The position numbers and the translations under genes were made by a program. Shown here piece by piece: positions 10,783 to 42,295 of a stretch of DNA of 64,000 nt. The stretch's first letter is position 1, and each line of letters begins with the position of its first letter. Below the pieces are notes generated by a model, which saw only the letters and a list, made by a program, of their open reading frames with translations, was not told where the DNA came from and ran no database searches. Location of the stretch: the NCBI GenBank assembly GCA_051294375.1, contig JBJCIZ010000744.1:1292262-1356261 (forward strand), read 5' to 3'. The stretch comes from Paraspadella gotoi. Lineage: Eukaryota; Animalia; Chaetognatha.

Positions 10783-13700
10783 AGCGTCGAGGGTGAAGGC
10801 GTTCTCTTCCTTGGTCGCCATGACTCCCGCCTTTTGATATTCGCCGACGCGTTTCTCGAAGAAGTTCGTTTTTCCTTCCAGACTGAAAAAGGAGGGACAG
10901 AAGGGAGGGGGAGATGGTGAAAGTCGGGAATCAAGCGACTGCGCAAGAATGATACGTACGCGCGTTAAAAGTCTGATGGAACCTTAACTTTCGACAAAAT
11001 ATGAACTAAATTGATAGAGTATTACCAGAGTGAGGAGCATTTTCAAAGTAACGGAACAACGGACAGACAAAAGCGAGCGATCGACTCCCTAAGTGTCTAA
11101 TAAAATTAAGAGTGGGGACCAAAAAAAAAAAAAAAAAAAAACAAAAGGGCGAAAGTTAAACGAATGGTGAAAATAAAAAAAAACAGGAAATGGAACCTAA
11201 AATAAATTAAGTTTAATTTAAAATATATTAAGTTTAATTTAATGGATTAACAGAAAAAGAGTAAAGACGAAAAGGCTTTCTCAGGACTTACCCAGCGACT
11301 CTGTATCCCCCCCCCCGCACCTTCTCCCTCTTTTCTCCTCTCCCTCTCCCTAATCTTTCTCCCCCCCCTCCCTCTTCCTCTCTTCACCTGATGTGCTCCA
11401 TAAAATCGAATGGGTTTTCCGCGTTGAAATGATTTCCGCATCCGAGTTCGCGAAGGAGTCGATCCGCGACGAACTCGATGTACCTTTTTTATTTTAAATT
11501 AAATTAATTAATTTAAATTTAATACATTCTACCTCTTATATCATATCAGATTAGAAAAAAGAAAAAGGACGTGTTTCGACTCTTTTTGAAAAATACTCTC
11601 ATTAAACTTATTTAACGATCAATGCAATGTCAAGCATATTAATCATACAAATCAAAAGCACACCAATCAATTTGTGCTATTCTTTATCTAGGGTTCATCA
11701 ATCTATCGTGGGACTCATCGAGCATAAGAGCTCTTCACGCTTCTATCATTTTCATTTATTTCATTCGCTTAATGGACAATATGTCATGATTACTTACCTT
11801 CATAACCTCAGATTAATTCATCAAACGACATACCGATCAATTAACGAAAAGATCACTGATAATGTGAATAAAAAGGAACATTAAACATAAACATAACATA
11901 AACAACCCCTAAAATATTTCAACTACAACAACAACTAACCAATCAATCCAATGAAAACCAACTCGACTGTCAATCACCTCTTCATCAGGTCGCAGTTCAT
12001 CCCGATGAGGTTGACGGGTAACGCGACGCTGAGGAACTCCTTCTCGATGTCCACGGCGTCGACGATAATCTCGAGGACGCGCGAGGCCGACGGTTTGTGG
12101 ACGAGGTGCTTGAACATCAGGCAGGCGAAGTCGCAGTGGAGACCCTCGTCGCGGGAGATGAGCTCGTTGCTGAAGGTCAGGCCTGATTAGAGAAAGTGGG
12201 GGGGAAGAGGAGGAGAAACCGATGAGTCGATTGGGAAAATTTTAATTGCTACACTAATGACAAAAGTGAATTCGTGAAATAGGACGATGAAATGACACAG
12301 GAATATAATTTATGACAGGTCAATGTCAATGCGACAATATGCAAATGAGATTGATGAGCTCAATCTCATTTTCGGTTGCGTCAAAAGTTCATCCCTTATA
12401 TATAAACTAGTAAACACAATAATAGTGTTACTGCTAAAGCTAAAACGTACTACATGCAAATTAATTTAACAATCTTAACGATTCGATAATTATTTTATAA
12501 TTATTTTCCTTTTCTAAAACACGGCAAAAAACTTTTCTAAAGGAAAATAGTTATCAAACTAGAAATCCAAAAGCCAAACACGCCCCCCTCCCACCGTTTC
12601 CAAAACTCACCCGGCATGAGTCCCCTCTTCTTGAGCCAAAATATGGCGGCGAAGGATCCGGAGAAGAAGATCCCCTCGACGGCGGCGAAGGCGACGACCC
12701 GTTCCGCAAAGGTCGCCTTTTCCGCGTTGATCCAGTTCAAAGCCCACTCCGCCTTTTTCTTCACGGCTGGGGTGAGGGGGAAGGGGCGAGGATCGTGAAA
12801 CGGGAGATGATTGGTTGTGAACATCGATCAACGAGACTTTCACTATTCTTTCGGTGAAGAGACTCACTTTAGACTCGCGAGCGGACTTGTCATCCCTCTT
12901 TGCCAGCGTAATTAGAGGCAAAATTTGAATTAGTTCAACAACGATTTATTTGTATTATAACGGACATGTTTCGGCTTTATTTGCAAGCCTTCTTCAGCGT
13001 CAATTTAGTTCAAATTGTGCCTCTAATAAAAACACAACGAAACAGAAAGGATTACAATACAATCCAACGTACAACGTAAATAATATTAAAAACTCCTCCG
13101 TCGCGCAGATAGCCACATACTGAATGATAAACAACGCGACAGTCGCTTAGCAACCCGCCCCCTTTTCTTACCCGGCAGATTCTCTATAGCATTGAAGAGA
13201 AAGTCCTTCTCCTCATTGTCCTTGATGTATGTGTCGATCAAGAGGCTGTACATCTCAGAGTGAATGTTTTCGATGGCGATTTGAAATCCGTAAAAGCATC
13301 GCGCCTCCGGGATCTTTTAAAATAGGAGAGAGAGAGAAAAAAATATGAGTTTTGAAAAACGGATGGAGAGTAGACACATTTGAATCCGACAAAGTTTTAA
13401 TTAGATAACCAGTCTGGGTGTCATTCTGTTCGTTTTTCCAAGCTCTTTTTAACTAAAAAAGTTTCATTTAAAAAAAAAAAACTTTTTCGCCCGAGTAAGG
13501 GGTGTTGAAGAGTCAAAATATGGAAATTCACCATTTTTTATCTTTTTCCAGTTAATTTTTTTAATATAATAATCTTTAATCAAGTTAATTACTTCTGATA
13601 ATGATTTTAATTTATCCTATTTAACTGTTTTTAAAATCATTCATTAAAAAAATATTAGTTTTTAGCTTAAGCCAAGGGTGTTGAAGAGCTAAAATGTTTA

Positions 13701-21367: not shown

Positions 21368-24054
21368 TCAATCATAAAAATCGAATTCGTCATCATCCTC
21401 TCCGACGGCCCCGCTCCCGTCTCCCTCGCCGCGACCGGAAATCGGGGCCCGCCAATCAGAATCGTCGTCGTCGTCATCGCGCCCAAGTCCGGATGGCAGC
21501 CGAGCCACGGTGGACGATCCTCTCGACGCCGAAGCCGCAGCCGACGTCGTCTTCGATTTCTCCTTGGATTTTTTGCCTTCGTCGACGCGAGAGCTCGAGG
21601 ACGTCGGCGACTTGGGATCTTCGGCGGCGACGGAAACGGCATCAGCGGGGGGTTTAGCGGCGGCGGCTGCGTTTCCCATGACGGCCTTCTGTATCGCCGC
21701 TTCGAGTTCGTCTTCGGAATCAGAATCGTCGATAGATTTCGCCGCGGCGGCGGTCTTCTTCGCCGAGTCGCCGCCGCCGCCGCCGAGGGTCATCTTCATC
21801 TGTTCGTAGGCGAAGCCGATTCCGACGTCGGCCTTTCGTCCGCGCGAGAAAATGTCATCCTCGTCGTCTTCGTTTCTCTCGAGGCTAAAATCCGCGCCGA
21901 CGGGACTGCGGAGCGACTTGTCCTTCTTCGAGGACGCCGGACGCGACGCCGATCGCGCCGCCGGAGACATTTCCGGCAGAGTCGCCTCCGACGCCGTTGA
22001 GCCGAGGCTGGATTCGAAGTCCAACGTGGCGGCGCCGCCTCCGCCGCTGGTGGCGCCTTTTTTCGACGGCTTCGAAAATTCGAGGTTCGTCGGTGACGCC
22101 GCTTGGAAATCCTCGACGCGCGGCGCAGTTTTGTCGGCGTCGTTTCGGTCCGAATCGTCGTCGACATCGCCGTCGTCGTCCTCGTCCAAATTGGCGCTGG
22201 GGATGCTGATGATGCCTCTTTTGGACGAGGGTGGAGGCCGAGTGTCGTCGTCATCGTCACGCGACGAAGGATCCGCAACTTCGTCGTCGCAATCGTCTTT
22301 ACGTTCGCCTTCCAGTGCACCGTCTCCATCACGACCACCTGCGAGTTCGCCGTCACCACCTTCGAGGTCGTCGTCGCGATCGCCGCGACCACCTTCCAGT
22401 TCGCCGCGACCACCTTCCAGTTCGCCGCGACCACCTTCCAGTTCGCCGCGACCACCTTCCAGTTCGCCGCGACCACCTTCCAGTTCGCCGCGACCACCTT
22501 CCAGTTCGCCGCGACCACCTTCCAGTTCGCCGCGACCTCCTCTTTCGCTCCAAGAATATCCTCGCGACGATAAATTCTTCTTCGACGGAGAATCCATCGA
22601 TCCTTCGACGGCGTCGACTCTCTCGTCCACCCGCAAATTCATCAATTGCAGATGGTCGACCTCCTTGGCGACGTCATTGGTATCCATTGTATCTCGTTTG
22701 CCCGCAGGATATTCCTCCTTTCGATTTTCATTATAATTTCCATCGCCTCCGACGAACGTTTCCATCTCACCTTCTTCGTCCGGACGCTTGAGCTTCGTCT
22801 CCGACTGACGACGATGGTTTCGAGAGTCGACAAGCGAAGACGGCTTCGGGTCGGGCACGGAAGGGTTTTGATGAAGTTGTGGTCGTGGCTGCGGTTGTGG
22901 AAACTTTGCGTGCGATTGCGGAAAAGAGGGAATCTGTGTGGTCGTCGTCGGGACTGAAGGAATGGGAGGAGGCAAACTGTCAACCGCCGGTGCTTGAAAA
23001 TGTTGAGGAGCTGGTCCGCTCATTGACTGATATGGCATAGTTCCGCCAGGTAGGTTATAAGGCACGGAAGTAGCGGAACCGTAAGCCACAGATGTTGGTA
23101 GCTGTTGATAAGGCACGCCTGCTTGCTGGTAAGGGACGCCTGGTGGTTGGTAAGGAGCGCTATACACCGGATTCTGCAATAATTGCGCTTGCGACGATTC
23201 GAATCCCGAAGGATCACGTGACTGCATCGCCGAAGAAAGAGTAAGTAAAGGCGGAACGGTCGACGCTGCACCTCCGGGAAAGTGAGACATTTGACCGGGA
23301 TAACCCTGACCAACGAGCGGCGCAGCCTGGACGCATTGGTAAGGCGAGCGACCGGACGTCGGCGGGTGAGGCAACGCAGCCGGAGCGAATGCCTGACCCT
23401 GATGATTCGTCCCTCGATCTTGACCCGTCTCCAAATTTCTCATTTTCTCTTCCTCGATTTTCTGCCAAACTGAAGGCAGCTGCCGCAGCCAACCCGGAAA
23501 CTCGGCCTCGATCAACCGCTCGTACTCCTCCTTGAGCGCCTTGAACTTGTCCGTCCGTCTGGCCATCCAATCCAGGCGCGAGTTGGCCCGCGCCATGTCC
23601 TGTCTGATCTTCTCGTGTCGGATGCGGGAGCGGCGCTCGTCCTCGCAGATTTTTCTAGTTAGAAGAGGGGGGGGTGGGGAATTTAGGGAGGGGTAATCTT
23701 TTTATTACTATGTGAATAAGCTGAAGGTAATTGTCTATAACTTGTTGAACCCCCTCAAGCAGACACGGGCTTTGAACCAGGCTTGAGGGTTTCACACTCC
23801 CATAAGGCGGCTCAATCAAGCCACACCCTCTTCCAACAACCCAACTCGACAATAACTAGTTACACTTACAATACAATTTACCTGTAATACCGTTCCAGCC
23901 TCTCGATCTTCGGTCCCGAAATTCGCGCGTCTATCGTCGGCGCCGCGGTGTCTAGTCGCCGGTCGAGTGCCAACCGGCGTCGCTCCAGTTCGTGTTGAAG
24001 GCTCTGGGTGCGGGCGACGCGCTCGAGAAACGGGACCGAGTCGTCCAGGGACAT
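21368..24054 (-). CDS. KIZ: Kizuna centrosomal protein ortholog, 2 exons, ~819 aa
   Basis: Exons 24054-23882 and 23654-21368 (phase 2, GT-AG). N-terminal coiled coil FLERVARTQSLQHELERRRLALDRRL...LERYYRKICEDERRSRIRHEK...RTDKFKALKEEYERLI resembles recalled human KIZ (YYERLGQLQHGLRDSEKKRLDLEKKL...EICESEKKAHTRN...TEKLQKLKLEYE). C-terminal SDSEDELEAAI and terminal DFYD resemble human ESDDSNSEIEAAL...DDFYD. Confidence 0.8.
22381..22537 (-). repeat. In-frame 21-bp coding tandem repeat (GELEGGR x~7) within KIZ
   Basis: Plus-strand unit TTCGCCGCGACCACCTTCCAG repeated about 7 times without variation. Confidence 0.95.
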
Positions 24055-34645: not shown

Positions 34646-35652
34646 GATCGAAAAGGCCTTTCAAAACTCGATCCACGATCTTGTGCAAAGATCTCCAGGC
34701 ATCATGCTCACCACCGGCGGAACCAACACCGGAGTCATGAAACTCGTCGGCAAAGCGATGAAAAACTTCGCCTTGACTCGCGTCGACGACGGAAACTTCC
34801 ACGACGCCTCAGCCGCCGCCGCCGCCGCCGCCGCAGAAGAAGAAGAAGCCGCCGCCGCCGCCCCGCCTTCCGTCTCCGCCCTCGTGCCCGCCACGGCCCG
34901 TGCCAACGCGGTCGTCGATATCGAGCCCGCCATGGCTAACGAAGACGACGCCTTTGCCAAGATCGCCTGCATCGGAATCGCTACTTGGGGCATCGTGGAG
35001 GGCAGAGACAAACTCGCCGGGGCCACTGGCTCCGTCGTTCCTTACGACGTCGATAAGGACGATAATAAAAAGACTTACCTCGATCCAAACCACACTCACT
35101 TTCTTCTCGTCGACGACGGCAGCGAGGGTAAGTTCGGACGAGAGATCGAGTTCCGATCTCGATTGGAAAAGTCACTCACCTTTTCCAAAAGCGCCCTCGC
35201 TCGAGCGCCGCTCGTCAACATCATCATCGAAGGCGGTCCCAACTCTCTCATGACCGTCCACGAGAGTCTGCTCATGAAGACGCCCTGCATCGTGCTCAAA
35301 GGAACGGGAAGAGCGGCCGACGTGCTCTCCGAGGCTCACGAGCTCTTCGACGTGTCGGTCGGAATGTCGGGCGGATCGGAGAGAGACTCCGCGTCGGCTT
35401 CTCCCTTCTTGACTCGCAAGTTGTCGGTCAACCGGGAGGAGACCGACGAAGCCGCTCGCGTGGCCGCCTTTCGCGAGAATCCGCGAGTTCGCGAGCAAAT
35501 AGAGAGGAGTTTGAGGCAGAGGCTCTTCCTTTCGCGAGCCGAGGATATTGAGAACAATTTGAAGTTGGTCATGGATTGTATGGATAATCACGAGTATTTG
35601 TATATATTTCAGGTGAGATATATAGAGGGAGGTGTTTATTTCTATTTTATAT

Positions 35653-35691
<39 letters not shown>

Positions 35692-36234
35692 TTATTCTGT
35701 TTGGGTTTTGGAATGGATCAGAATACATACTTTAATTGAGAGAAAAATCTGTTTTTGTTTTCAGACTGTTCGTTTTTTACTAATAATAATAACAATAATA
35801 ATAATAATAAATTCGTTGTCTGTAGACAAAAAGAAATTTGATTTTTATGATTTAGAATATATTTTTAGCCTTTGTAGCTTTGTGTATTGTTTGTTAATGA
35901 TGATTGTACTGAATCAACCATGTTCCATACGAATTAAAGCGTATATAGTATATATATATATATTCCTTTCAGTTTTATAATTTTCCTTTTTGAATTTTAA
36001 TCTCCCTATTAAGACGGGTTTAAAAGTTAAAAAAATAATCAAAAAAACTCAATGAACTCAACAACAACAATAATAATAACAACAACAACGACGACGACAA
36101 CGACGACCAATAAAGTAGATTTAAAAAAAAACAAAAGATCAAACGATTCGATCTCCGAAATCGAAAGACCCGCAGTTTCGGAACAATGTTGGGAATCCCG
36201 GCGGATATTAAAAAAAGGGAATTAATGATTAAAT

Positions 36235-37320: not shown

Positions 37321-39519
37321 AGAGTAGCCCTTGAAACGGGTTGGATTTTTGCGTCCATTTTTTTCAGGGGATTGGTATAAGCGGTGGGGTGGTTAAAGAG
37401 AATAACATTGCTGGAAGAATGATACATAATGGACTTTCATAGTCATTTAAATGTGATCATAGGGAAATATACGTGAACAAGAAGGACTCTCTCTCCTCTC
37501 TCTCGTCTCTCTCTCTCTCTCCTTCTCTTCTCTCTTCGTCGGTGATAATTTATTTGAAAAGCTTTTCTTGTCAGGGCCACTCGTTGTAAATACTGTATAT
37601 ACTTATTATAAAAAACAGTTAATTTCTTGTTTCTCCTGATTTCTCCAAGCATTATGCAAAACGCTCTCTCATCTCTCTGACTGTTCCAACTCTCCCCTCT
37701 GCTCTCTTTGTCCTCCGTCCATTAAGTCTCAATGCCTTGCTTCCTCCTCTTTTTTCTTTTGTGCTCTCTAATCTTTATCTATCTCTATCTTTTTATTTTT
37801 TCTCTCTCTCTCTTCTCTCTCTAGTCTCTTACTCTCATACTTCTTGGATATATTTGAAAAGCTTTTTCTTAGTCATCCAATCCTTTGGAAAATACTGTAT
37901 ATACTAACTTCATAAAATTCGTTTCTTGTTTCTCTGATTCTCGATGCCACAACGTCTCTCTCTCTCTCTCTCCTCTACTCTCTGCCTCTTCTCTCTCTCT
38001 GTCTTCTGGATTAATATTGAAAGCTTTTCTTGTCACCACTCTTGGAATACTGTTTATACTTAATCATAATAAATTCGGTTTTAAAGTAAAATTTTTCTTC
38101 TTCTTGAAAATAGATAAGCTTCGCCTTACGATCAATTTGTTCAGTTTCTTTAAAATTACCCACCTCGTAGTGATTTCTCTAAAAGAAATCCTCCTACGTC
38201 AGTACTGTTCTTTAATAAAATCGCGTTCGCATTCATTCTTATTTCATTTATTCTACAAAAATCAGGACCACTGATGTGGTCCCCCGCACACAACAAACGA
38301 AAAGTGATGATTTAATGAGTCAACCTGTAATATTTCTTGGTTTCCCAAAAGTGGCCGATAGCATCCGACACTGAGTCTTCTTCATGAGTATCTGATCTCA
38401 TGCGCGGGAAGGGAAGATCGAAGAGATACTGTGTAGAGGGGAGATGGGGAATTAATATTAATATGTAATACTGCGGGGATTAGGAATTTAATATTATATT
38501 ATTTAATACTGCGTAGTCTTGGAATATTAAATTATTAAGTATTTTGGGCATTTTTGTATTGAATTGCAAAGGCTGAAACGCGAAGTTAGTGACCGAAATC
38601 GCTTCTTAAGATCTTTGGGCGCAAAGGGGTCTGACACCTTATCTCCCTCTGGCTCCACTGTTAACTTTTTCTAATTTAAGTTAATTTGGGTAACAAACAT
38701 TTAGAACAAGTTTGAAATGAACCTTCACAACGTGTTATTTGTAACAATAATAACGGACGATGTTTCGCGCTCTTGTTCGAAGCCCTTTTATATCAACTTG
38801 AACAAGAGCCGAAACATGTCGTATATTATGTTTCAAATAAATCGTTGTTGAATCATTTCAAACTTTTCTCTAAAACTCAACCACAACGAAACGAAGGATT
38901 TATTAATGGGGTAAAAAATTGAAAAAAAAAAGTATCTTTCTGAAAATTTCTTGTTTCTTTTTAAGTTTTTTTAAAAAACTTTGTTTTGTCATTTTTGAAA
39001 CATTTTTTCTTTATTTGAGATTGTTGTTGTTTACCAGGGCTTAGGTGGGATAAAAATATGGGGTGAATGAGTTTTAATAGCTTTTTACAATATAGTATCA
39101 ATAGTTTAATAGTATAATAGTTTAATATGGGCGATGGTTTTAAGGGGTGAGGCATACGAGGGTACCAACAGGTTGTGGTAATGGAGGTAGAGGCCAGAGA
39201 GTGAAGTTGCAGGGATATGCATCATTCCTTGGGTAAGAAAGGTTTAAGGCAAAACAAGTATTGGGGTAACCAATGGGCAATAATGTTTAAAAAATAGTTT
39301 GTTTTGTTATTTTTAATACAAGTTGTTAATTCAATTTTTTGCCCATATTTAAACATCTCACCCAACGACTTAACCCAACTCAAACTTTCTTCGGACTGAT
39401 ACTGCACTCGGATAAAAAAAATCCTTGAAAAAAAAAGCCCTTTAATATCCGTTCAATCTTCAGATTAATAATTTAAGCACCTGATTTTTCAACCGACGAA
39501 ATTGATAAACGCATCCTTT

Positions 39520-39850
39520 ACCGACCCTGATCCTTAAACGCGACCTGATGCCCTTAACCGACGCTGATCCTTTACGACCTGATCCTTAACCGACCTGATT
39601 TCAACTGAACCAAAATTGATAGACAAAAAGAAAGTTATCCGACCCAATTGTTAACGACCTGATCCTTACCGACCTGATCCTTAACCACCTGATTCCACTT
39701 AACCGATCTGATCCCTTAACGAACCTTGATCCTTAACCGACGCTGATTCACTTCCCCGATCGCTGATCCTTACCGACCAGATGTCATTTAAGCCGACCTG
39801 ATCCCTTTAACCGGACCTGATCCTTAAACCGACCTGATTACATCTGATCC
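39520..39850. repeat. ~16-bp minisatellite (TTAACCGACCTGATCC)n, mirrored at 40975-41275
   Basis: About 20 noisy units. Confidence 0.9.
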
Positions 39851-40299
39851 CTCGATGCTTATTGCACTCGTACGAGCAATCCCATGAAGAGCTGCGATGG
39901 AAGGAGTTCTGCTTCGCGCGGAGGGCGGTCGGACGAAGAGATCCACGCGTTTGTCCTCTTCGAATTTGATGCCCTTTTGTTAAAAGATGGAGGGGAGATC
40001 GACGAGAGAGAGAGAGACGAGGGAGACCAGTGAGAGGAGAGAGTTATCGATGGATCTTGGAAAATATAAACACGTCTGCCATCTACAGACTTGCATGCCG
40101 CTTTGTTTAAAGAGTGAGGAGTTGAGAAGGACGAGAGAGAGAGCGTCTGGAAAATATCAACACGTCTGCCCCTCTACAAAGCTTGATGCCCTTTTGTTTA
40201 AGATGGGAGAGAGAGAGAGAGATCGAGGGTCTGGAAAATATCAGGCACGTCTGCTCTTACAAATCTTGATGCCCTTTTGTTTAAAGATGAGCGGAGGAC

Positions 40300-40337
<38 letters not shown>

Positions 40338-40611
40338 TGGCGTCTGGACAATATCAACAGGTTCTGCCCTGCTACAAACTTGATGCGCCCTTTTTGTGTC
40401 TCAAAGAGAGTGAGGACAGTAGAAGAGACGGCGAGTGACCAGAGAGAGAGGAAAAGGATTAGACGAGAGAGAGATGAGTGAGAGAGAGACGAGAGATGAT
40501 GATCTGAGAGAGAGAGAACACCGTCCGAAGAAGAAGAGGACCGAGTATAGAGACCAAGACACACACAGGTAGATTAAAACAAGCTGNNNNNNNNNNNNNN
40601 NNNNNNNNNNN

Positions 40612-40646
<35 letters not shown>

Positions 40647-41862
40647 ATCTTTAAACAAAAGGGCATCAAGTTTGTAGAGGGCAGACGTGTTGATATTTTC
40701 CAGACCCTCTCTCTCTCTCTCTCCTCATCTTTACAAAAGGCATCAAGTCTGTAGAGGCAGACGTGTTTATATTTTCTCCAGATTCCACGCTAACTCTCTC
40801 TCTTCTCTCTCTCTCTCTCTCTCTCTCTCCTCATCTTTAAAAAAGGGAATCAATTCGAAGAGGACAAACGCGTGGATCCTTCGTCGGACGCCTCGCTTGC
40901 TCCCCGCGAAGAGAGAATTCCCTTCCTCGAGCCATCTCTTTCTGATTGCTTCGCTCGTCGACGTCAAAAGCATCGAGGATCAGATGTATCAGGATCGGTT
41001 AAGGATCAGGTCGGTTGATATGTCGGTTAAGGATCTGGTCGGTAAGGATCCAGGTCGGGGAAGGATCAGTCGGTTAAGGATCTCGGTAAGGTAGATCCGG
41101 TTAAGGATCAGGTCGGTTGGATCAGTCGGAAGGACAGGTCGTGTTAATTGGTCGGATTAACTTTCTTTTTGTCTATCATTTTGGTCAGTTGAACATCAGG
41201 TCGGTAAGGATCTAGGTCAGTAAGGGATCAGGTCGGTTGAAGGATCAAGAGGTCGGTTAAGGATCAGGTCGGTAAAGGAATGGCGTTTATCAATTTCGTC
41301 GGTTGAAAATCAGGTCGCTTAATTATTAATCTGAAGATTGAACGGGATTTTAAAGGGCTTTTTTTTTCAGGATTTTTTTTACATCACAAATTTGAGTTTT
41401 AAGTTTAATGTTTAAATATGGGCAAAAAATTGAAATTACACTTGTATTAAATAACAAAACAAACTATTTTTTAAACATTATTGCCCATTGGTTACCCTCA
41501 TACTTTTTTGGCCTTAAACCTCTTACCCAAAATGATCATATCTCTTCTGCAATTCACTCTCTGGCCTCTCCCTCCCATTACCACAACCTTTGTACCCTCG
41601 TATGCCTCACCCTTAAACCACTCGCCCCATATTAAACTATTATACTATTATACTATTAAACTGTTATACTATTAAAATATTAAACCACTCACCCCATATT
41701 TTATCCCACTAACCCTGGTAAACAACACAAACCAAAGAAAAATGTTCAAAAATGACAAAACAAAAGTTTTTTAAAAAAACTTTAAAAGAAACAAAATTTT
41801 CAAGATATTTTTTTTTTCAATTTTTTACCCATTATAATCCTTTTGTTTCGTTGTGGTTGAGA

Positions 41863-42032
41863 TTTAGAGAAAAGTTTGAAATGAATTCAACAACGATTTA
41901 TTTGAAACAATAATAACGGACATGTTTCGGCTCTTGTTCAAGTTGATAAAGGCTTGAACAAGAGCCGAAACATGTCCGTTATTATTGTTACAAATAAAAC
42001 GTTGTTGAATTCATTTCAAACTTTTCTCTAAA
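41863..42032. mobile_element. 170-bp palindrome of two head-to-head Penelope-type pLTR ends (mirror copy at ~38700-38872)
   Basis: 80-bp arms ...CAACAACGATTTATTTGAAACAATAATAACGGACATGTTTCGGCTCTTGTTCAAG / loop TTGATAAAGG / CTTGAACAAGAGCCGAAACATGTCCGTT.... Shares TTCAACAACGATTTATTTG and AACGGACATGTTTCGGCT with 12934-12976. Confidence 0.7.
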
Positions 42033-42295
42033 TTTTTTACCCAAATTAAACTTAAATTAGAAAATAAGTTAACAGTGAGCCAGAGGAGATAAGGTGTCAG
42101 TATCCCTTTGCGCCCAAAGATTTAAGAAGATTTCGGTCACTAACTTCGCGTTTTAGCCTTTGGCAATTCATACCAAAAATGCCAAAATATTAATATTAAT
42201 ATTAATTCCCAAACTACGCAGTATTAATATTAATATTAATTCCTAATCTCCGCAGTATTAATATTAATATTAATTCCCCATCTCCCTCTACACAG

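Follow-up and report, generated by a model that had tools for sequence, protein, structure and literature searches.

A minimal hammerhead in an RRM2 intron of the chaetognath Paraspadella gotoi, probably left by a short Penelope-like insertion

The stretch of DNA considered here, referred to as the window, comprises 64,000 nucleotides of the chaetognath Paraspadella gotoi (contig JBJCIZ010000744.1 of assembly GCA_051294375.1, positions 1,292,262 to 1,356,261) and carries, on its minus strand, a gene with eight coding exons for a ribonucleotide reductase small subunit of the RRM2 type (PF00268-type). The best matches of its protein are transcripts with 88% identity; two of these can be traced to the JGI contigs Ga0193200 and Ga0193518, which look like marine (Tara Oceans) metatranscriptomes. 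Matches from named organisms, at 82%, range over arthropods and fish. The fourth coding intron of this gene (13171..12767, minus strand, 405 nt, GT..AG) harbors a minimal type-I hammerhead ribozyme motif in sense orientation, 208 nt from the donor site and within an insertion that accounts for 153 nt of the intron. The origin of this motif and its possible action on the host transcript are the focus of this report. An earlier interpretation made from the letters of the window, here called the sequence-only reading, had placed the motif in the sense strand of RRM2 intron 4, and the exon and intron layout confirms that placement.

On the minus strand, from 13002 to 12958, the motif reads TGACG CTGAAGA A GGCTT GCAAATA AAGCC GAAA CATG TC^CGTTA, the caret marking the predicted cut. 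Helix I (UGACG/CGUUA, 5 bp including one G.U pair) flanks both the core and the cleavage site, as in the type-I topology, and the catalytic core combines CUGAAGA, which fits the consensus CUGANGA, with GAAA and the triplet GUC, whose C17 lies at 12963, with cleavage predicted between 12963 and 12962. Helix II consists of 5 bp (GGCUU/AAGCC) with a G10.1-C11.1 closing pair and a 7-nt loop, and is separated from A9 by one unpaired A. Helix III is reduced to the palindromic ACAUGU (A-CAUG-U), which does not close in a monomer. When re-read from the minus strand, motif, strand and cut site all agree with the sequence-only reading, which had also judged helix III too short for closure in a monomer.

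Hammerheads of this shape are a recurring component of metazoan Penelope-like elements (PLEs). The minimal hammerheads described from these elements share a helix I of 4-5 bp, an unpaired nucleotide between A9 and G10.1, the G10.1-C11.1 pair, and a palindromic 15.2-16.2 pair and loop 3 (Cervera & de la Pena 2014, PMC4209133), and all four features are present in the RRM2 copy. The additional A after A9, which had earlier been listed as a deviation, is therefore a published hallmark of the class and is now read as typical rather than aberrant. Further likeness lies in the type-I arrangement, in the dimer-capable ACAUGU and in the distribution of the copies, which are scattered and mostly solitary, with some opposite-strand pairs. 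In two respects the window copies differ from the published PLE hammerheads: helix II has 5 bp and a 7-nt loop, compared with 7-8 bp in the Schistosoma families, and no reverse transcriptase or endonuclease open reading frame (ORF) was seen beside any copy examined in this analysis. Small PLE-associated hammerhead variants have also been described, by Lunse, Weinberg & Breaker as cited in a review (PMC6765202).

A hammerhead search, which had been put forward as a check on the motif, gives a divided answer. A descriptor tailored to this kind of motif and run over both strands returns exactly one match in the whole window, even with the helices relaxed to at least 3 bp. Against a first-order Markov null of 112 Mb with the window's composition, the expectation per window is 0.038 for helices of at least 3 bp and 0.008 for helices of at least 4 bp, and helices of at least 5 bp, as found in the RRM2 intron, do not occur at all. 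The hammerhead models of Rfam, on the other hand, give no match around the site, neither at the gathering score nor at E<=10; weak spurious matches there (Flavo-1, MIR5998) are due to the hairpin. These Rfam models have a helix III that can close, which is absent from the minimal class.

The 153-bp insertion (12911-13063) is composed of a direct copy, an abutting inverted copy and a one-sided tail. The direct copy (12911..13005, minus strand, 95 nt) is a 5'-truncated piece of the element, which begins 8 nt upstream of the hammerhead core and extends to the element 3' end (...TTTTGCCTCTAAT). Next to it, the terminal 22 nt of the element recur in inverted orientation (13006..13027, plus strand); this inverted copy forms the upstream arm of an inverted repeat and matches the other arm, 12911-12932, at 20 of 22 positions. 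An A/C-rich tail of 36 nt (AAAAACACAACGAAACAGAAAGGATTACAATACAAT; 13028..13063, plus strand) is attached to the inverted copy only, and the whole is bounded by two copies of a putative target-site duplication, CCAGCGTA at 12903..12910 and CCAACGTA at 13064..13071 (both given for the plus strand). The sequence-only reading had noted an inverted duplication of 18 bp, which is real, with arms of 22 nt rather than 18. It had also likened the inverted ends to those of PLE insertions, which holds, and regarded them as target-like, which does not: they represent the element's own inverted, 5'-truncated 3' end with its tail.

A second insertion of the same family is revealed by a covariance model, R1, which was built only from 109 metagenome hammerheads (see below) and used to search the whole window without filters. 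Although trained on metagenome copies alone, R1 recovers the RRM2 copy (12958..13002) at 54.5 bits (E about 1e-13) and in addition detects a second locus at 41934-41985 (26.1 bits, E=3e-5), together with an overlapping inverted partial match. The R1 match, the inverted repeat and the homology to the RRM2 insertion (locus 1) define this locus 2 as an independent insertion at 41832..42033 on the plus strand. It consists of an inverted, A/C-rich tail of 30 nt (CTCAACCACAACGAAACAAAAGGATTATAA, 41832-41861), an inverted arm of 81 nt (41862-41942), a unique core piece of 10 nt between the arms (TTGATAAAGG, 41943-41952) and a direct arm of 81 nt (41953-42033), the two arms being 98% complementary, from which we conclude that the insertion is young. 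Its target duplication is perfect over 10-11 bp (TTTTT(T)ACCCA, 41821-41831 and 42033/4-42043).

Each arm of locus 2 runs from inside helix II through GAAACATGTC-CGTTAT... to ...CTTTTCTCTAAAT, and both arms are 81-83% identical to locus 1 from the 3' half of the hammerhead to the element end. The tails of the two loci (AAAAACACAACGAAACAGAAAGGATTACAATACAAT and CTCAACCACAACGAAACAAAAGGATTATAA) are likewise homologous, with about 90% identity over 29 nt, and at both loci the tail occurs on a single side, outside the inverted repeat and inside the target duplications. The layout is thus common to both insertions, while their inner breakpoints differ, with arms of 22 nt and 81 nt of the same sequence. 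The core of locus 2 (41943-41949) reads UUGAUAA, with U3/A8 in place of C3/G8; the same covariation occurs naturally in the Cercyon PLEs of Schistosoma (PMC4209133), and as the insertion is young, the variant may be a trait of the family rather than a sign of decay.

A third locus, at approximately 38700..38905 on the minus strand, is a degraded twin of locus 2, with 88% identity over 259 nt including the flanks. These shared flanks indicate that it stems from a large inverted duplication and not from a separate insertion. The duplication (38540-40093 / 40667-42189, arm segments 71-95% identical) doubles locus 2 together with its flanks and has an assembly gap (N run 40587-40611) at its centre; it lies downstream of an exon encoding a TRPM SLOG domain (34683-35735). 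It could be a true palindromic duplication or a fold-back artefact of the assembly.

The arrangement at loci 1 and 2 corresponds to what has been reported for PLE insertions, which are strongly 5'-truncated, often accompanied by an adjacent inverted and likewise 5'-truncated copy, and provided with a tail of 30-40 bp that is often found at one end only, with the hammerhead near the 3' end (Craig et al. 2021, PMC8557442). A mechanistic basis for such structures has been obtained in vitro with the Poseidon element of Anolis, whose enzyme cuts and extends both strands of the target DNA (PMC11167929). In that system the enzyme begins to copy the RNA at an internal position: an AC-rich stem-loop that follows the hammerhead has two start sites, located 111-118 bp into the ORF, and the tail represents the stretch between them. 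As the hammerhead cut lies 26 bp into the ORF, the start sites are located roughly 85-92 nt downstream of the cut.

Both window loci show the inverted truncated copy, the one-sided tail of 30-36 nt and the bounding target duplication, and they share with the published insertions the strong 5' truncation, the direct abutment of the two copies, a hammerhead a few tens of nucleotides before the 3' end of the insertion, and an A/C-rich region in which initiation presumably takes place. They differ in being very short (153 and 202 bp) and non-coding, with a 3' stem-loop that is weakly predicted. Loci 1 and 2 fit the model of internal initiation on both strands point for point; the unequal arms of 22 and 81 nt are accounted for, because variable 5' truncation predicts differing lengths. 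Together with the four class features of the hammerhead and its relatives described below, this architecture supports the PLE kinship that the sequence-only reading had proposed, and we consider it probable, at roughly 85%, that the motif in the RRM2 intron is the hammerhead near the 3' end of a PLE, or of a short non-autonomous element that PLE machinery has mobilised.

A single event of target-primed reverse transcription would then have left the 153-bp fragment, dead on arrival, in intron 4. Both ends of the cut target would have primed cDNA synthesis at the 3' initiation region of the element RNA, and on one side the cDNA would have reached 95 nt back from the 3' end, across the hammerhead and slightly beyond helix I. 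On the other side it would have covered only 22 nt plus the tail of 36 nt. Head-to-head joining of the two cDNAs would have left the 8-bp target duplication. The function of the hammerhead itself would belong to the life cycle of the element, in the processing of tandem element transcripts as a dimer, possibly aided by the element's own protein.

The relatives from which R1 was built were found by an exact-pattern scan of JGI metagenome contigs (CTGANGANGGCTT-N(4-12)-AAGCCGAAACATGTC), in which at least 120 loci carry the same hammerhead; a scan of viral_contigs with the hammerhead pattern gives no match. The names of the matched JGI contigs presumably refer to insect (termite) gut samples, which would include host DNA. 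The observations that follow hold among the matches listed, and several of them speak for a structure under selection and for an arrangement like that of PLEs. The copies fall into families of repeats about 200 bp long, in which the hammerhead takes the middle position, and helix I, which lies outside the search pattern, is retained with compensatory changes between subfamilies. A nucleotide after A9, which the pattern demanded, is present in all 109 relatives and varies among T, A, G and C. An inverted hammerhead half is found head-to-head within 150 nt upstream in 19 of 113 copies, so most copies are without an inverted partner, and where a partner exists its distance varies. One locus, L040, contains two direct hammerhead copies 647 nt apart.

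In 59 of 105 copies (loci L004-L123) the hammerhead is followed downstream by a further block, GTTGTG(TTAGAC) or GTTGTG(TTAGACTG), at a median distance of 47 nt from C17, compared with 1 of 105 in which the block lies upstream; in the window copies, CGTTGTTGAAC/T is found at +26 and +31. Possibly, this block is a conserved element for the initiation of reverse transcription or for recognition. In a blastn comparison of the whole intron with 120 metagenome loci, homology is confined to the hammerhead. The window element is accordingly a different family with the same ribozyme, and the metagenome copies do not define its flanks. As a side observation, two of the metagenome loci (L054, 4095-4127, and L113) share this hammerhead-like core but lack a good helix I; the core is followed by a GTGTTGTGTATGACTG block and lies about 145 nt upstream of an ORF for a bacterial-type aspartate-semialdehyde dehydrogenase (PF01118 + PF02774).

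Several points weigh against a PLE insertion as the source of the motif. The target duplication of locus 1 is imperfect, matching at 7 of 8 positions, and the stem CGUUGU with the tail sequence ACAACG, proposed as the initiation stem-loop, is no more stable than shuffled sequences (z = -0.3 to -0.65). The insertion is inferred rather than seen, as no close relative provides an empty site. Neither a reverse transcriptase (RT) nor a GIY-YIG domain is found in 19 scanned window ORFs of at least 130 aa, or in the seven scanned of the 14 metagenome-locus ORFs of at least 220 aa, a search that did not extend to degraded or distant copies. The link to autonomous PLEs therefore builds on the architecture and the type of hammerhead rather than on a coding partner, and the element may be a non-autonomous passenger of PLE machinery. 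Finally, the core is intact and in sense orientation, and the motif may have weak cleavage activity.

This last point leads to the question of whether the hammerhead acts on its host gene. The sequence-only reading had proposed a regulated self-cleavage of the RRM2 pre-mRNA, and a ribozyme exapted by the host might indeed cut this transcript, as a dimer or with a cofactor, and thereby tune its output or yield a truncated RNA. In its favor, neither the core nor helices I and II are damaged, the orientation in the intron is sense, and other animals have intronic hammerheads in the sense strand, according to background cited in PMC4209133. Yet within the gene R1 detects a single copy in RRM2 orientation, so that a dimer partner in cis is lacking, and the helix III of this copy consists of ACAUGU only. 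The minimum-energy fold of the 50-nt motif is not a hammerhead and is not unusually stable (z = -1.3), and in its context the 22-bp inverted-repeat hairpin dominates the predicted fold. In addition, the motif is clearly derived from a transposon, with a homologous copy elsewhere in the window.

The behavior of characterized PLE hammerheads points in the same direction. Single minimal hammerheads show no detectable cleavage, and dimers cleave weakly and mostly at non-physiological Mg2+ (PMC4209133), while the Anolis PLE hammerhead is cleaved only when its own protein is added and RNA-seq reveals no cleaved ends (PMC11167929); a review reaches the same conclusion (PMC6765202). The intronic hammerheads of vertebrates (Rfam Hammerhead_HH9/HH10, and the intronic hammerheads of Xenopus) resemble the RRM2 copy in that they are type-I motifs located in sense orientation within introns of protein-coding genes, but they have a stable helix III, loop contacts between helices I and II, and deep conservation at orthologous sites, none of which applies to the RRM2 copy.

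Conservation can be judged from two RRM2 loci of related marine-metagenome organisms, L130 and L131, which have an intron at the identical codon position and in the same phase. The L130 protein is about 85% identical to that of the window. These introns measure 248 nt (L130) and about 137 nt (L131), and the window intron without the insertion and one copy of the duplication would measure 244 nt. Neither of the two contains a hammerhead, as judged by R1 and a search for the core motif. They share no detectable sequence with the window intron, and an empty site cannot be aligned; what the comparison demonstrates is hence a lack of conservation and not an empty site. In L130 (2458-2970), coding exons 1-4 of the window gene are fused into one, with the intron at the position of window intron 4 retained, which means that window introns 1-3, including the 5-kb intron 3, were either gained in the window lineage or lost in the relative.

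Genomic RRM2 relatives on long contigs (P0018 and P0155) are intronless and lie in compact, gene-dense contexts, and are therefore of no use for an intron comparison. Intronless RRM2 genes, of 376 and 575 aa, are found on six marine metagenome contigs from ENA (L001, L002, L126-L129), where they share a syntenic, compact and gene-dense context and adjoin an ORF of 1413-1466 aa, with ResIII/helicase matches in L001 and L002; P0018 is 84% identical to the window protein. These contigs resemble some compact genome, possibly that of a large DNA virus, which has acquired an animal-type ribonucleotide reductase small subunit.

With a single copy, an open helix III, no conservation and a literature that describes such hammerheads as inactive alone or dependent on a protein, the proposed regulation of RRM2 by self-cleavage is unsupported, and we regard a host-exapted ribozyme as improbable. 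In the RRM2 pre-mRNA the lone copy would be inert, or its self-cleavage very weak at best, and the 153-bp insertion would be a near-neutral passenger of the intron. Even more doubtful is a conditional variant in which the RRM2 pre-mRNA is cut only in the presence of the PLE protein of the family or of a dimer partner supplied in trans by transcripts of other family copies, which would couple bursts of retroelement expression to the supply of dNTPs.

Another class of mobile element could produce a similar outline. A miniature inverted-repeat transposable element (MITE), a cut-and-paste element with terminal inverted repeats of 22 nt and an 8-bp duplication, would make the hammerhead-like sequence incidental, and the 22-nt inverted repeat beside an 8-bp near-duplication in the RRM2 intron is what such an element would leave. 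The termini are not fixed, however, as the arms are 22 nt long at locus 1 but 81 nt long at locus 2 and have different inner breakpoints. A homologous tail of 30-36 nt lies outside the repeat, on one side only and inside the duplications, and the listed metagenome copies are mostly unpaired or paired at variable distance. Variable arms, a one-sided tail and variable pairing argue for 5' truncation during retrotransposition and not for ends bound by a transposase, and a MITE is about as improbable a source of the insertion as host exaptation is an explanation of the ribozyme.

Slightly less probable again is a non-long-terminal-repeat retrozyme or a hammerhead satellite monomer, that is, a tandem repeat of 170-400 bp with a circular RNA. 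Type-I hammerheads are frequent in animal retrozymes (PMC7229834), and the two direct copies in L040 would suit such an origin. The animal retrozymes described (PMC7229834; bioRxiv 10.64898/2026.07.22.740005) resemble the elements of the window in being short and non-coding, in their type-I hammerheads with a short palindromic helix III and, probably, in their dependence on PLE machinery; they differ in forming tandem repeats that give rise to circular RNAs, whereas the window copies are single or inverted. No tandem arrangement is seen at any of the three window loci, and the layout with inverted copy and tail is the signature of PLE insertions (PMC8557442). The 2026 preprint (bioRxiv 10.64898/2026.07.22.740005) reports retrozymes as excluded from introns and argues that they derive from PLE pLTRs; if this is so, the retrozyme explanation largely merges with that of a PLE.

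A mere chance likeness to the hammerhead consensus, with which the silence of the Rfam models would agree, has a negligible probability and is already refuted by the Markov null, in which no motif of equal quality appears in 112 Mb, and by homologues of the motif, both elsewhere in the window and at no fewer than 120 metagenome loci.

Three further features of the window can be mentioned. An intronless ORF of 565 aa with an F-box (PF12937/PF00646; 8686-10383, minus strand) lies about 400 nt downstream of the RRM2 stop codon, on the same strand and directly beyond the last RRM2 exon. A single-exon ORF of 742 aa (21368-23596, minus strand) contains tandem, heptad-like GRGELEG repeats and has no Pfam match; the frames that overlap it are also open, owing to the repeat. 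The TRPM exon matches other sequences at only about 32% identity, across phyla.

RRM2 is an essential, S-phase-regulated gene of dNTP synthesis, and no evidence for a regulatory role of the hammerhead in this gene has emerged. The hammerhead in its intron is fully explained as the relic of a short, dead-on-arrival insertion of the PLE type, in which the core by chance remained intact and came to lie in the sense strand. Should the lone hammerhead cleave in vivo, an essential transcript of the host would be acted upon by the ribozyme of a retroelement, which would be a rare case. For the family itself, the window provides two very short PLE-type insertions with clear boundaries. Both combine an inverted copy with a one-sided tail and a target duplication, and both agree with a model recently derived in vitro, according to which the two strands of the target prime reverse transcription at an internal site of the RNA.

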